Shown here piece after piece: positions 14,774 to 27,043 of a DNA stretch of 44,456 nt; positions within the stretch are counted from its first letter, which is position 1; the number at the start of each line of letters is the position of its first letter. The stretch is from Basidiobolus meristosporus CBS 931.73 (lineage: Eukaryota; Fungi; Basidiobolomycota). Location: NCBI GenBank assembly GCA_002104905.1, contig MCFE01000694.1, positions 1 through 44,456 of the forward strand. Direction: 5' to 3'. The notes beneath the pieces are model-generated. The model made no database searches and was not told where the DNA came from. It saw only the letters and a list, made by a program, of their open reading frames with translations. The position numbers and the translations under genes were made by a program.

Positions 14774-15930
14774 CTATGGGTTGGACAGCAACCATTCTAC
14801 GGCACTGTTGACGTTCCCTCCGGTGGCAAGTAGGGCGCGAATGTTTTTGGAAGCATCCCAGAAGCCCATCTCGTTGAGTTGCTGAAGTTGCACTTGGAAG
14901 CGTTCCTCAGGTGGCTGTTGGTTTTGCTGTTGAGCCGCGGGGGATGCCATACCGCCCATCATCTGCTGAAGCATAGAAAGGGTAGCTGCGGGATCTGCTC
15001 CGAATGGAGAGGCTGCGGCCCCTGGGTTGTACATAGCAAATGGGTTGGCGGCTCCGGTGTTGGGCGAGGTGGGGTTGGGTGTGGTGTTAGAGTCGGCTCC
15101 GCTTCTTGGAGCTTCGGGGGTTGTGGCACCGGTAGTAGGGGCGCCGCCGAATCCGCCGAAGTTGTTCATTCCGCCAAAACCACCTCCCATACCACCAAAG
15201 GCTTGGGTCATCTGGAACATGTTGCGTAGCATGTTGGGATCGCTCAGCATTTGTCTGAATTGTGGGGTGTTGATCATGTTTCTCATTTCCGGAGGAAGGT
15301 TCTGGAATTGTGGGCTGTTGGACAGCATGTGCTCAACAAACTGGGGGTTTTGGAAAAGGGTAGACATGGAGTTCATCACCTCGGGGTTGCTGAAAAGGGC
15401 ATTCATCATGGAGGGGTCCATAGGCGGCATTCCACCAGCGCCAAAACCACCACCCATGCCACCGAAACCACCGAAAGGATCCGCACCAGCACCAGCGCCA
15501 CCGAACATATTCCCGAAGGCAGCCATAGGGTTCGCATTTTGCTGTGTGTTTGGTTGGCTTTCCGGGGTGGCGGCAGGAGTAGTTGGTTGTTGCTCCGCAG
15601 CAGGCTGAGCTGCAGCTCTAGGGGCTATGAAGGAAATAACAGTTCAGTATACTCTCTTTCGTGGAATTCAACGATATATAATCACCTTGCTGGCCGGGAG
15701 CGGCACCACGGACCATGTGAATGGTGTTGCCATCGGCAATCTTGTAGCTCTCTACCGTATCGGCATCCTTGCAGCACTCTACCGGAGAAGATGAGACGCT
15801 GACGCTCGGCAGGAGTATCGGATTTCTCAGCGATCGCTTCTTTCAGTTCCAATACGGTTTTTTCGGTATCGATGACCACGGAGTACTTGGTCTCGTTAGA
15901 ACACTTGATATTAATAGTGATTTCGGGCAT
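14774..15930 (-). CDS. DSK2: Ubiquilin (UBL-STI1-UBA); one extra base at 15771-15772 breaks the UBL frame
   Basis: UBL motif QRLIFSGRVL(K)DADTVESYKIADGNTIHMV is restored by removing one nucleotide. Met/Asn/Pro-rich STI1 repeats. UBA motif PPEERFQVQLQQLNEMGF...ALLATGGNVNSAVEWLL. One intron near 15622-15681. Confidence 0.92.
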
Positions 15931-20375: not shown

Positions 20376-22134
20376 ATGATCGCAGGTGTTCGAGAGGCAA
20401 AGACATTCCTGAGTTCGGTGTATCAACGCTCCGAAGACTCCTCGGGCAAAAAACCATACGTCACACTTTCCTATGCTCAGAGCTTGGATGGTAAGATTTC
20501 CGGCCCGGGTGGCAAGATGATTTCTCTGAATGGGAACGAATCAATGGCTATGGTCCACCGGTAAATGTGTGCTGCCTTCGCAATATTGGACAATACGACT
20601 AATCGCTCTCCCATAAAAGCCTACGTGTGATTAACGATGGTATTTTAATTGGCATTGGGGCGATGCTTCGAGAAGACCCACGCTTGACAGGTACTTTCTC
20701 TTTATCAGTCAGCATGCGAACCCTGAACCTAACAGAACAATGTAGCTCGAGTGGTGGAGCCTGGCGAGATCCCAGATCAGCCACAGCCTATTATTCTTGA
20801 TTCCAACCTTCGGTTTCCTTTGAAATCAAACCTGATCTTGAGTGCCTCCCAAGGTGGCGGAAAGTATCCCTGGGTATTCTGCGGTCCTGATCATTCCCCT
20901 CAACGTCGACAGGTATTTCTCCATAGCCATTGTCCATGACGAGCAAACTCCGCTAACGTTAAGAAGGCGCTTGAGGCGGCTGGGGTTCAGGTTTTTGTTG
21001 TTTCGAAGCAAGGCGATAAATTATCTATTCGCGAAGTTCTTAAAAAGACCGAGGAATTGGGCATTCGTAAACTCATGGTTGAAGGCGGCACAAATGTCAC
21101 GCGGGAATTCTTGACGTCTGGATATGTGGACCTTTGTGTGATTACCTTAGCACCCATGTATATCGGCGGGACCGGCATATCATTAATTGAAAACGGAGAT
21201 GTATGTAATTGGATTCGATCAGGGCTAGCAGCTTATGTAAATTAACTCTATTCTTTTGGATACTTGATGTTAGCATCGGCCTGCATCAAAGCTAAGCGAC
21301 GTAAGGTATCACCAGTTTGGTGCAGACATGGTCGTTACCGGATATGCCTCGCCCATTGCCCAAGGAGGACCTCAAAACCAACCAGCCACCTATCCACATC
21401 ACAGCACCCCTCCACCTTACCAACAACCAAATGGCGGGGGAATTTATCCTCCGAATCCTAGCCCTGGCTATCCGCCTACACCATTGAATAGTGGAAATTC
21501 ACAGCAAGGCCGCCACTCCGAAACCGGACCACCACTTCCTCCACGAAATAACACCAGTTCTCAACAGGGATATCCTCCGAAGAGCACCACCCCTGTGCAC
21601 CAGAGCTCGGGATATCCACCACAAGCTGCCTCAGGCTATCCACCACGCCCTGTTGGCTATTCACCCCAAGCTACTTCTGGTTATCCACCAGCTACCCCTG
21701 GATATCCACCACGGCCAACCTCTGGATATCCACCACAACCTACTTCAGGATATCCACCGCAGGCTTCTTCAGGATATCCACCACAGACCTCTTCAGGATA
21801 TCCACCACAAGCTACTTCAGGATATCCACCACAAGGTAGTTCAGGTTATCCACCCTATGTTACAACAGGCTATTCGCCACACGCCAATGTAGGTTATCCA
21901 CCTCAGGCTGCCTCGGGCTATCCACCACCAGTAAACGCGGGCTACCCACCCCACACTACCACAGGTTATCCATCACGCCAATCTACAGGCTATCCCTCAA
22001 AGCCAACGCAGGATCCTTATCCTCCTGTACATCCACCACCCAAGACAGACTCATCAAACCAAAACAGTGGAAACAAACAGAGCGGGTACCCATCCTCGAA
22101 CAACCCTCCCCAAGAAGCCACCACCACAAAGTAA
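20376..22134 (+). CDS. RIB7: Rib7-type pyrimidine reductase (RibD C-terminal fold) fused to a ~260-aa S/G/Y/P/Q repeat tail (506 aa, 5 exons)
   Basis: Exons 20376-20560, 20620-20690, 20746-20912, 20964-21200 and 21274-22134 total 1521 nt. Motifs PYVTLSYAQSLDG, DGILIGIG..L..DPRLT, LMVEGG and YHQFGADMVV run in frame into the repeat tail. Confidence 0.85.
21604..21996 (+). repeat. Imperfect 24-bp coding repeat (xxSGYPPQ octapeptide)
   Basis: Units such as TCAGGATATCCACCACAAGCTACT. The whole tail has 15 GYPP, 2 GYSP and 3 GYPS motifs. Confidence 0.9.
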
Positions 22135-23838: not shown

Positions 23839-26800
23839 TCATTGGGTTCCTTTGGATCCCCGGGAATTGGTGCTGCTCTCGCTCTCTGCCTCGCTCTGAG
23901 CGGACGACAGATTCGCCGACGAGAGTCGGGCGAGCTGACTGGGACAGTGGTAGCCCAGCTTCTCGATGGAGGTGTTCGACGAGCCGTAGCTGGAGATCTC
24001 CGACAAGGCACGACTCGTCTTGCGGCGCTTCTCCCGCTCGAACTCCGACCACCTCTTCATGGTGATCTGGGATCCGTCGAATTCACCCTCCCTCTTCGAG
24101 TGATCCCCACCACCAGCAACCTCGCCTTCCACCAGTCTGGTCTGACCCCAACTGAAATCATCGAAATGCCAGAACGCGTACGCCGGAAGAACAAGATTCC
24201 AAATCGGCAGCGAGATAAGGTAAATGACCATCCAGGCGATGTACACCAGCTTCCTCGAGGTGAGCAAAATCAAGATGGCTGGGGAACCCAGAATCAAGGC
24301 CAAGAGGGTAAGCGGGATGATGGGCGGTGGGTGGACGATGAAGGCAATCACGATCAGGTAGACGGTGAAACAAATGGAGGCGGGAAGGACGGTGGTACTG
24401 ACGAGATCCATGAAGATGACGAACTGCATGGAGAAACAGAATGTTCCACACAGGTCACGAACCAGGACCAACTCAAGAAGGTTGTGGACGGTGGAGTTGA
24501 TCCAGCGACGACGTTGCGAAAGCAAAACGCTGAATGCGTCAGGGACAACAGTCTTGCATACTGCCTGAGGCACAAACATCATCTTACGCTTCGGGAAGGT
24601 TTTCAGCATGAGGGTGGTGAGGTAACGATCCTCACCTAGCAGGAGGAGATTCTTCTTGTGCAACGTGTCCACCACATTCTCCGAGTAGTGCTCCACGATG
24701 TCGGGACTGGCCAGCACTGGCACCCAGGTGTTGCTACTCCCCTTGGGCGCTTTGATGCGATACATACAGAAGCAACCGGGCAAACAGGTCACGCTTCCAA
24801 ACACCGCCTCAAACGACTTGACCAGATGATGCGAGATGTAATACTCGAACACCTGGATCGTGGTCACCCAGCTGTCGGTCTTGTTGGCAATCTTGGTTTC
24901 ACCGCATAGCCCCATGATCTGAGGATCGCGCACCATGCACGAGATCATGCGGGTGGCAGAATCTGGATAGACTCTTGTATCAGCATCCACCATGAGGATG
25001 ATCTCGAAATTATCCGGACTGACGCCAGTCGTACTCCAGACCGCATTGAAGAGCTCGTACTCCAGCTCCGTCATACGGTCGTCAAACATGACACGCTGGA
25101 GGAAGGACATCAGGATGATCTGACTGTCACGTTTGCCTCGATTCCCTGGCTTGGCTGCGTTGGCCTCCTGGGGAGTGCCGCATTTGGAGATCAGGATCAT
25201 GGGGACCCGCTGTTGCTTCTCGATGGGAACCAGCTCGTCGTCGAACTTGTAATAGCCCGCGTACACCTTGGCCATGTTATGTCTCTTGGAGCCATCGGCA
25301 ATGGCCACGTAGGAGTAGGGCTTGACGTTCTCGGGGGCAATCACGAAATCCTTCATCATCGACAAGCAAATGTCCGGGGTGGACATGTCGTTACCGCTGC
25401 CAACAATAATACCATCAGCGATCACAAGAATCAGCTTGTGTGACTGGGGATAGTCGGTCAAGGCGAGCGAGTCGAGCGTGGTGCGAATTCCCTCGGCACC
25501 CTCGGAGTAGCATGTGACCAGCATCATGGTGTATGCCAGCTTGAAATTGAATGGTTGGAAGGACTGAGGCGGGGGAGTTGGTGGGATATGGATGTTGGAG
25601 GTAAGAGTACTTGAGGAGTACGAGGATCGACGAGAGGGGTCCTGGTTGGGCGAGATGGGTCGGCAATTAGGTGGGACTAGTGAGTTGGAAGATGCCCTCC
25701 CGTCGCTATGGTATGGATGGTTTGCCTTGACTCTCTTTTGAAGGTCGGTGCTGTGGTTGCTTGGAATGCGGCCGGTAGGAGGGAGAGCACTGTTGGTGCC
25801 TTGCTGGATGTACGAGCGTGATGCGGGAATCGCCAGGCTGGTGGGGCTCTCACTCCACTGCTCAATAGCCTCCATTCGCTTCATGCGCTCCTCGTAAGTC
25901 TCTTGGCGGAAAGTACCAAGTCGCCAACTTAACACCCATCCAAAGTAAACAGCGAAGAAAAACTTGGTCAACACAACGCCGAGGATCACAACCAAGGAGA
26001 CGTAGAGAATGATTTTCGAGATGATACAGCCCATTGTGGTCGTATCTAGTGCGCCCACGCGGAAGATCTGCATGGCGCATTTTGCTGCATCACGGTGATA
26101 ATTGTTCATTAAGTATGTGATGTCTGTTCCACCATAAATCGAGTCGGGTTGAGACAATTTGCTGAACACCGGTGTTACATCAATGCCCGGCAGTAGCGAA
26201 TGCACCAGAGAAAAATCCAGTACTTGGCTGTTGTAGACGACTAGGTTGCGTTGTTTGACATCTTTCCACTTATAATATACATCCCCGCCCAGAGGAAGAT
26301 TGCTATAGGTCTCCATGTCTGTTGAGTTGCGGAAGTAGCAGTCAGCTGGGTTGTAGTCAATATCCCCCCCAACTGCCATGTTTATCTGGCGAGGAACGCA
26401 GGGAAAGTAGATGCCTTGATCGGCTATTCCTCCTATAACACCTTGACAATGACCGCCCACGTTTTGAACAAGGAACGAAACGTCCTTTCCGCCGTCACCA
26501 CGGAACAAATCCGTATTACCAATATTCAAGGTATTACCATTGATGACGACTTCGTTAGGGCTTATGTCATCTATATAAACCCGCTGTACGCGACTCAGAC
26601 CACAGAGTACCTCCTCAAAGGCGAAAGTCAAGAATCCAACTGCACCACACATGACAAGAATAATACTACACAGGGCCATTTTCTCTCTCCATGCTTGTCT
26701 GATTTCACTGGTCTTCATTCCTAAAATTTCGAATCAGCAAAGTTTCGTACTGAGAAGGGGATTCCCCGATCTTACCGAGGCAAGCCAGTAGAGGACTGGG

Positions 26801-27043
26801 AGCATAGAAAGTTACCAGCCAGGAGAAAATGACCCAGCAGCTAGGCCGTTTCTTGGCTGGCTTTCCAGTCGTGGGCTTCGCATTCTTGTGCATGCTAACT
26901 GCCCTACCCAAGATCTCTTCTCGGTTTCGGATGTTCTGCTCAGCTGCTGGAACGCGACGTGGATGTTTTGAGGTTGGGCGACGTTCGGGGCGGATCAAAG
27001 ATTTTTGGCGACGAGGCGCATTGCTTCTGGTGCCGCTTTCCAT
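23839..27043 (-). CDS. CHS3: Class IV (Chs3-like) chitin synthase, 2 exons
   Basis: N-terminal RQKSLIRPER, intron 26775-26721, AWREKMALC, LVTCYSEG, NRGKRDSQ, MVDADT, CLPGCFCMYR, LGEDRYL, SQRRRWINST and WHFDDFSWG. Confidence 0.95.

Follow-up and report, generated by a model that had tools for sequence, protein, structure and literature searches.

We analyzed the whole contig MCFE01000694.1 (assembly GCA_002104905.1) of the gut fungus Basidiobolus meristosporus CBS 931.73, a window of 44,456 bp, and in it the gene RIB7, which encodes a reductase of riboflavin synthesis. Read at the DNA level, positions 20376-22134 on the + strand were shown to form a single predicted gene, in which the Rib7 reductase continues, within the last exon, into a long tail of regularly spaced Gly-Tyr-Pro-Pro (GYPP) motifs. 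The explanation that best fits the whole of the evidence, and which we hold with moderate confidence, is a fused five-exon Rib7 whose tail is under selection at the protein level and serves as a multivalent array of Tyr/Pro stickers. Both the enzyme and the compositional class of its repeat tail are known; the tail itself is specific to the lineage.

The RIB7 gene and its catalytic domain

The gene model was read directly from the DNA and consisted of five exons (Table 1), with a total coding sequence of 1521 nucleotides (nt), or 506 codons plus the stop. The introns were 51-73 nt long with a GC content of 34-45%, began with GTAAAT, GTACTT, GTATTT, and GTATGT, and ended in YAG-type acceptors. 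A first-pass annotation of the region had noted that the last Rib7 strand runs into the repeats with no stop between them, and the exon-5 frame (21274-22134) was indeed open throughout, beginning just past the acceptor of intron 4 and closing with a terminal TAA. The only ATG in this frame, at 21328, encodes a Met within the last Rib7 strand, and the tail therefore has no start of its own; its reported lack of Met was borne out over all 262 residues. Searches were run exon by exon, and full-length orthologues from B. ranarum served as proxies for the joined protein.

The catalytic part was shown, on its predicted translation, to be a 2,5-diamino-6-ribosylamino-4(3H)-pyrimidinone 5'-phosphate reductase (Rib7) of the RibD_C fold. 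The RibD_C profile positions (PF01872; TIGR00227, TIGR01508) followed each other in order, with 1-35 in exon 1, 36-61 in exon 2, and 113-178 in exon 4, while single exons scored under the whole-protein profile cut-offs, as expected of fragments. Each exon was collinear with P0001, an annotated B. ranarum protein (residue ranges in Table 1), with 78.5% identity overall. The columns that are invariant in the Rib7 family alignment are VTL.YAQSLDG, H.LR, DPRL, and MVEGG, and the exon translations contained VTLSYAQSLDG, EDPRLT, and LMVEGG. Residues 1-24 of exon 5 formed the final two strands of the domain; their counterparts in the AlphaFold2 (AF2) model of P0001 were E224-233 and E236-244, and the two strands also aligned with the Rib7 family consensus. 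The closest solved structures were RibD/Rib7 reductases with chains of 219-251 amino acids (aa), yeast Rib7 (PDB 4HA7) among them. The fold and motifs were shared with the canonical reductases of Saccharomyces cerevisiae (Rib7, 4HA7) and Methanocaldococcus jannaschii (2AZN), and the Basidiobolus enzyme is expected to catalyze the same step. The catalytic domain would keep a housekeeping role in riboflavin synthesis.

The canonical enzymes differed from the Basidiobolus protein in where they end. Canonical Rib7 proteins were 219-293 aa long and ended no more than about 8 residues past the last strand, whereas the Basidiobolus protein ran 262 residues further. Rib7 proteins of Glomeromycota, Mortierellomycota, and Basidiomycota were 258-293 aa long and ended about 8 residues past that strand. 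The earlier statement that Rib7 proteins are normally about 240-260 aa long was right in that short enzymes are the rule, but the range was wider, at about 220-290 aa (219-251 for the solved chains and 258-293 for the fungal proteins).

Composition, conservation and distribution of the tail

The tail that follows ...DMVVTGY comprised 262 residues without a stop; the probability of 262 stop-free codons at this base composition was about 0.0006. Six residues, P (67), S (34), G (30), Y (25), T (24), and Q (23), made up 77% of the tail, proline alone 26%. With 4 acidic residues (D+E), 10 basic residues (K+R), and 10 residues of the ILVMFWC group, the tail was nearly free of acidic and hydrophobic residues, in agreement with the first-pass annotation. 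That annotation had also counted 15 GYPP and 5 GYSP/GYPS motifs, mostly at a spacing of 8 residues, and we obtained exactly these numbers (15 GYPP, 2 GYSP, and 3 GYPS, or 20 GY[PS][PS] motifs). Successive motifs were spaced by 34, 14, 8, 7, 8, and 7 residues, then by twelve consecutive gaps of 8, and finally by 32. Tandem Repeats Finder detected 13.5 copies of a 24-nt repeat at 21610-21928. When the residues were shuffled 10000 times, 0.43 motifs were expected and 4 was the maximum, against the 20 observed; similarly, 14 of the 24 Tyr-Tyr gaps were exactly 8 residues long, compared to 1.15 expected from shuffles. Pfam and NCBIfam profiles recognized no domain in exon 5. An open reading frame of 133 aa at 21491-21892 with 'DIHH(K/R)LLQ' repeats was considered as an alternative and rejected, being merely the GYPP array read in the +1 frame.

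The top word-search match of the exon-5 product was the B. ranarum protein P0001 (470 aa), annotated as this reductase with PF01872. A catalytic-domain search, among proteins of 258-822 aa, yielded a second B. ranarum gene, P0025 (594 aa). Both are automatic predictions from assembly GCA_040143965.1 under the name 2,5-diamino-6-(ribosylamino)-4(3H)-pyrimidinone 5'-phosphate reductase; RibD_C was the only Pfam domain in each, and both carried GYPP tails. The tail was looked for in orthologues and was found, in the same exon structure and of the same kind, in two B. ranarum genes. Their catalytic domains were 78.5% (P0001) and 76.4% (P0025) identical to that of the window, and 81% identical to each other, compared to the 76-79% shared with the window. 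All three copies had the five-exon structure, the junction (...DMV[VI]xGYAS...), the YP-x6-YP register, and the QQGYPP...KTTSPV island. The B. ranarum copies differed from the window in their spacers (SNNS or SQNS, against QxxS), in tail length, and in the placement of the island relative to the arrays; furthermore, P0025 lacked PPLPPR, and P0001 ended at a TAA within a unit, near the contig end. At the level of synteny, the P0001 locus (L001) retained dynamitin upstream, while the P0025 locus (L002) retained the UQ_con gene downstream and had Nup85 upstream instead. In the window itself, dynamitin (on the - strand) lies upstream of RIB7, and downstream of it is a Ubc2/Rad6-like UQ_con gene. 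As judged from predicted proteins, the fusion architecture appears specific to Basidiobolus and would have arisen before these three copies diverged.

We further examined how the repeat units vary. Across the 14 units that lie in register, codons for G, Y, P, and P differed almost exclusively at third positions, where the entropy was 1.49 bits for Gly and 1.43 bits for the second Pro. The first and second codon positions of GYPP were invariant apart from a few Pro-to-Ser changes, and the four spacer codons varied everywhere. A different unit variant had been amplified in each copy, GYPPQxxS in the window and GYPPSNNS and AYPPSQNS in B. ranarum, and YP-x6-YP occurred 12, 8, and 16 times in the three tails. 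The proportion of synonymous differences between copies (pS) was 0.62-0.75, that is, saturated, and 48-59% of the aligned tail columns were identical. Similarity between tails exceeded that of shuffles of 8-residue blocks, with z values of 11.9, 3.6, and 2.2. The three tails also shared a collinear island that begins with YPPxxL and ends with QQGYPP and KxTxPV, and two of the copies have PPLPPR between these elements. Together, these patterns showed, as far as codon comparison can tell, selection on the encoded protein, which would act on the Tyr-Pro-Pro motif and its spacing. The array would have grown by amplification of the 24-nt unit, each copy amplifying its own variant while the YP-x6-YP register was kept.

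The exon-5 product was then searched exhaustively with phmmer against 1.84 billion representatives (E <= 0.001). Among the 219 matches, the junction between Rib7 and tail was spanned only by the Basidiobolus protein P0001. The other top matches carried unrelated domains such as OCRE, SpoU methylase, ribosomal L9, DM9, and beta-propeller, and annexins occurred in the match lists of both the word search and the exhaustive search. The look-alike tails on unrelated proteins are convergent YPP-rich low-complexity runs. Of Basidiobolus proteins, only the Rib7 copies shared the tail, both among the matches listed in word searches, which covered a set length window and at most 8000 candidates, and in the exhaustive search, and no other GYPP run was found in the 44-kb window, L001, and L002 (about 62 kb in total). 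The fusion appears confined to one genus. The first-pass annotation had not recognized the fusion. We found no description of it in the literature searched on GYPP repeats and on Basidiobolus and riboflavin, but the fusion was already public in the form of the two automatically annotated B. ranarum proteins. A Rib7 protein from Dentiscutata (P0035, 397 aa) was considered as another carrier and rejected, since its extension was unrelated and its last strand was missing; it looks like a mis-modeled gene. YPP-rich runs were seen on an SpoU rRNA methylase and on a ribosomal protein L9 among metagenomic proteins (P0148, P0153), so that tails of this type recur in other lineages on housekeeping proteins unrelated to Rib7.

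Possible roles of the tail and competing explanations

In the AF2 model of P0001, which was based on an alignment of 19 sequences, the catalytic domain had a predicted local distance difference test score (pLDDT) of 80-98, and the tail scored 38-48 with no secondary structure. The exon-5 product of the window gave a mean pLDDT of 47, again with no secondary structure, from a shallow alignment. These models and the composition of the tail fit intrinsic disorder. The N-termini of annexins A7 and A11, whose partners include sorcin and ALG-2, likewise hold GYPP in a disordered Pro/Gly/Tyr-rich segment beside a folded domain. The GYPP motifs of ANXA7 contact sorcin (PMC8556303), and the Gly-Tyr-Pro-rich regions of both annexins have a documented role in protein-protein contacts (PMC8556303, PMC5037681). 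However, annexins carry their motifs at the N-terminus, irregularly arranged and in few copies, whereas the Rib7 tail is a regular C-terminal octad array, and the likeness is one of composition only. Homology to the annexins did not hold up: no annexin domain was present, and annexin matches were compositional, covering the repeat part only (E 1e-4 to 1e-10) amid many unrelated domain families. GYPP repeats have been described as a proline-rich interaction class, and tail-anchored CYSTM proteins such as pepper Bs5 carry tandem Gly-Tyr-Pro-Pro repeats like those of the Rib7 tail (PMC10030403). CYSTM proteins are small and membrane-anchored, whereas the carrier here is a soluble metabolic enzyme without a transmembrane segment. 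The [G/S]Y[G/S] region of FUS and the heptads of the RNA polymerase II carboxy-terminal domain (CTD) have evenly spaced tyrosines in a sticker-and-spacer layout tied to self-association. The Rib7 tail resembles them in its evenly spaced Tyr, its richness in Ser, Gly, Gln, Thr, and Pro, its near lack of charge, and its predicted disorder. It differs in its much higher proline content (26%), its 8-residue period, and the lack of an RNA-binding or transcription context.

Based on these likenesses, the tail would be a multivalent and evenly spaced array of Tyr/Pro 'stickers' for protein-protein contacts. Such contacts may consist of self-association of the enzyme or of docking to partners that bind proline/tyrosine motifs, for example penta-EF-hand or SH3-type proteins, and sticker-and-spacer self-association was equally compatible with the evidence as partner docking. 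In either case, the tail would set the location or assembly state in which Rib7 works; the condensate-forming, scaffolding, or flavin-localizing role suggested in the first-pass annotation is likewise hypothetical. A more specific version, in which the GYPP array is a working module that gathers the oligomeric riboflavin enzyme or tethers a partner and has been retained after gene duplication in more than one Basidiobolus species, is put forward only tentatively. If it were true, Rib7 would stand among the few enzymes of core vitamin biosynthesis that are spatially organized by a repeat tail.

The reading of the gene as one fused unit was weighed against two others that detach the tail from the enzyme. 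The public annotation of GCA_002104905.1 divides RIB7 into a 234-aa RibD_C model (20376-21245) and a separate model of 165 residues (21559-22053), which counts against the fusion. Were it correct, Rib7 would end at the TAA at 21243-21245 and the repeats would lie on a separate transcript or outside the enzyme, which we consider very improbable. The 234-aa model has the same first three introns as ours, but it leaves intron 4 unspliced and reads 14 intron-encoded residues up to that TAA in place of the two terminal strands common to the whole family, and these strands are encoded right after the canonical intron 4 (Table 1). The intron-4 position is occupied by an intron of different length in both B. 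ranarum genes; intron 4 is therefore not coding. The 165-residue model has no start and no stop, the exon-5 frame of Rib7 is the only one open across it, and the tail it covers lacks Met. On the DNA evidence, the fused model is far better than the split one, and adopting it would correct a public record that divides an essential riboflavin gene into a truncated enzyme and an orphan fragment. A second possibility is that the fused frame exists in the DNA while the main mRNA isoform loses the tail through an unrecognized intron or early polyadenylation, leaving most of the enzyme tail-less. The evolutionary lability of tail length would suit this; nevertheless it seems quite improbable, given that no set of donor, branch, and acceptor like those of the four real introns was found in 21340-22134, that the GC content of the tail was 50-55% compared to the 34-45% of the introns, and that motif conservation at the protein level is unexpected for untranslated sequence.

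The main rival accepts a translated tail and takes it as a tolerated by-product of slippage of the 24-nt unit, harmless and with no specific role. We doubt this explanation and still take it seriously, as several observations weigh against a selected sticker array and some of them favor slippage directly. The unit variants differed between copies, and the length of the tail varied from about 225 to about 350 aa over the three copies, with the frame open over 222-346 tail codons. Central units were nearly identical in DNA, which points to recent amplification. The tail codons ended in A or T (CCA, GGA, TCA, TAT), in contrast to the C-ending preference of neighboring genes, which is expected of recently amplified DNA and not of a translationally optimized region. 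In P0001 (L001:7596-7717), a TAA stood where the TAT of the unit was expected, and GYPP-like sequence continued in frame for 22 more codons to the contig end. A recent nonsense mutation or an error in sequencing the repeat would account for this TAA; because further GYPP-like sequence follows it, the length of the distal tail would not be tightly constrained. Similar YPP-rich runs were present on many unrelated proteins across life. The openness of the tail frame is in itself weak evidence, because the +1 frame was nearly open too (only 1-3 stops per tail in all three copies), and the dN/dS ratio (nonsynonymous to synonymous) of the tail, about 0.2-0.35, came from aligning the repeats under guidance of the protein sequence, a procedure that lowers dN.

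Candidate docking motifs were also compared across the three tails. The class II SH3 ligand PxxPx[RK] was represented by PPLPPR in the window and in P0001 and was missing from P0025, and PPxY, GYF, EVH1, NPF, and DPF/W motifs were absent or not conserved across the three tails. ALG-2 motifs are defined as type 1 (PPYP/PxYP-x4-YP) and type 2 (PxPGF) (PMC3397542, PMC4346919, PMC5037681), and the strict forms PxYPx4YP and PxPGF occurred 0 times in all three tails. The link to ALG-2 binding drawn in the first-pass annotation was not supported by these strict motifs; looser binding is possible, as the review among these sources allows for variable motif spacing and classes annexins A7 and A11 as no more than '1-like'. 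What speaks for a selected array over slippage is that the variation of GYPP codons was confined to third positions and that the YP-x6-YP register was kept in three copies whose synonymous sites are saturated. The conserved island was collinear, and no other gene in the roughly 62 kb examined had such a run.

Low-complexity tails on eukaryotic enzymes are common, and that of Rib7 is notable in being regular, conserved between copies, and easy to test. A separable tail on an enzyme that has relatives of known structure and can be assayed simply by complementation in yeast makes a clean natural test case, and the three copies provide natural variants in which the spacers differ and the 8-residue register is the same. 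If the tail is functional, a metabolic enzyme joins a short list of users of GYPP arrays that are mostly membrane-associated (annexins, CYSTM proteins). If it is neutral, it documents the extent of harmless repeat expansion on an essential enzyme.

Coordinates of RIB7 and neighboring genes

Table 1. Coordinates of the RIB7 exons, intron 4, and the parts of the tail in the window
Feature	Position	Strand	Details
Exon 1	20376..20560	+	ATG at 20376, phase 2 end, GTAAAT donor at 20561; RibD_C profile positions 1-35, ribD_Cterm 2-37; P0001 residues 1-60
Exon 2	20620..20690	+	ribD_Cterm 39-61, rib_reduct_arch 36-58; P0001 residues 62-84
Exon 3	20746..20912	+	47/55 identities to P0001 residues 86-140; TGTAG acceptor, GTATTT donor
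Exon 4 (LMVEGG motif inside)	20964..21200	+	RibD_C positions 116-174, E 1.6e-10; 63/79 identical to P0001 residues 140-218
Intron 4	21201..21273	+	GTATGT...TTAG, 73 nt, 34% GC
Exon 5 start, last two Rib7 beta-strands (...LSDVRYHQFGADMVVTGY)	21274..21345	+	19/24 identities to P0001 residues 219-242
Proximal tail linker	21346..21465	+	Pro/Gln/Gly-rich, one PPPY
Conserved non-repeat island	21466..21603	+	YPPxxL, PPLPPR (21529-21546), QQGYPP, K-[ST]-T-x-P-V-[HQ]
Octapeptide array GY[PS][PS]-x4	21610..21999	+	24-nt unit, 17 motifs, near-perfect 8-residue register
Distal tail	22000..22134	+	Pro/Ser/Asn-rich, one further GYPS, TAA stop 22132-22134

Several other genes were observed in the window. An intron-less major facilitator superfamily (MFS) gene is a neighbor. 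An exon of a ubiquilin/Dsk2-like gene with Gly/Met/Phe-rich 'GGMGGGFG' stretches lies at 14774-15526 on the - strand, and its orthologue in L001 has ubiquitin and UBA domains. A chitin synthase gene occupies 23839-26910 on the - strand with an open reading frame of 959 aa (the public model has 999 aa, with CHS4 and Chitin_synth_2 domains), and it adjoins the E2 (ubiquitin-conjugating enzyme) gene tail to tail.

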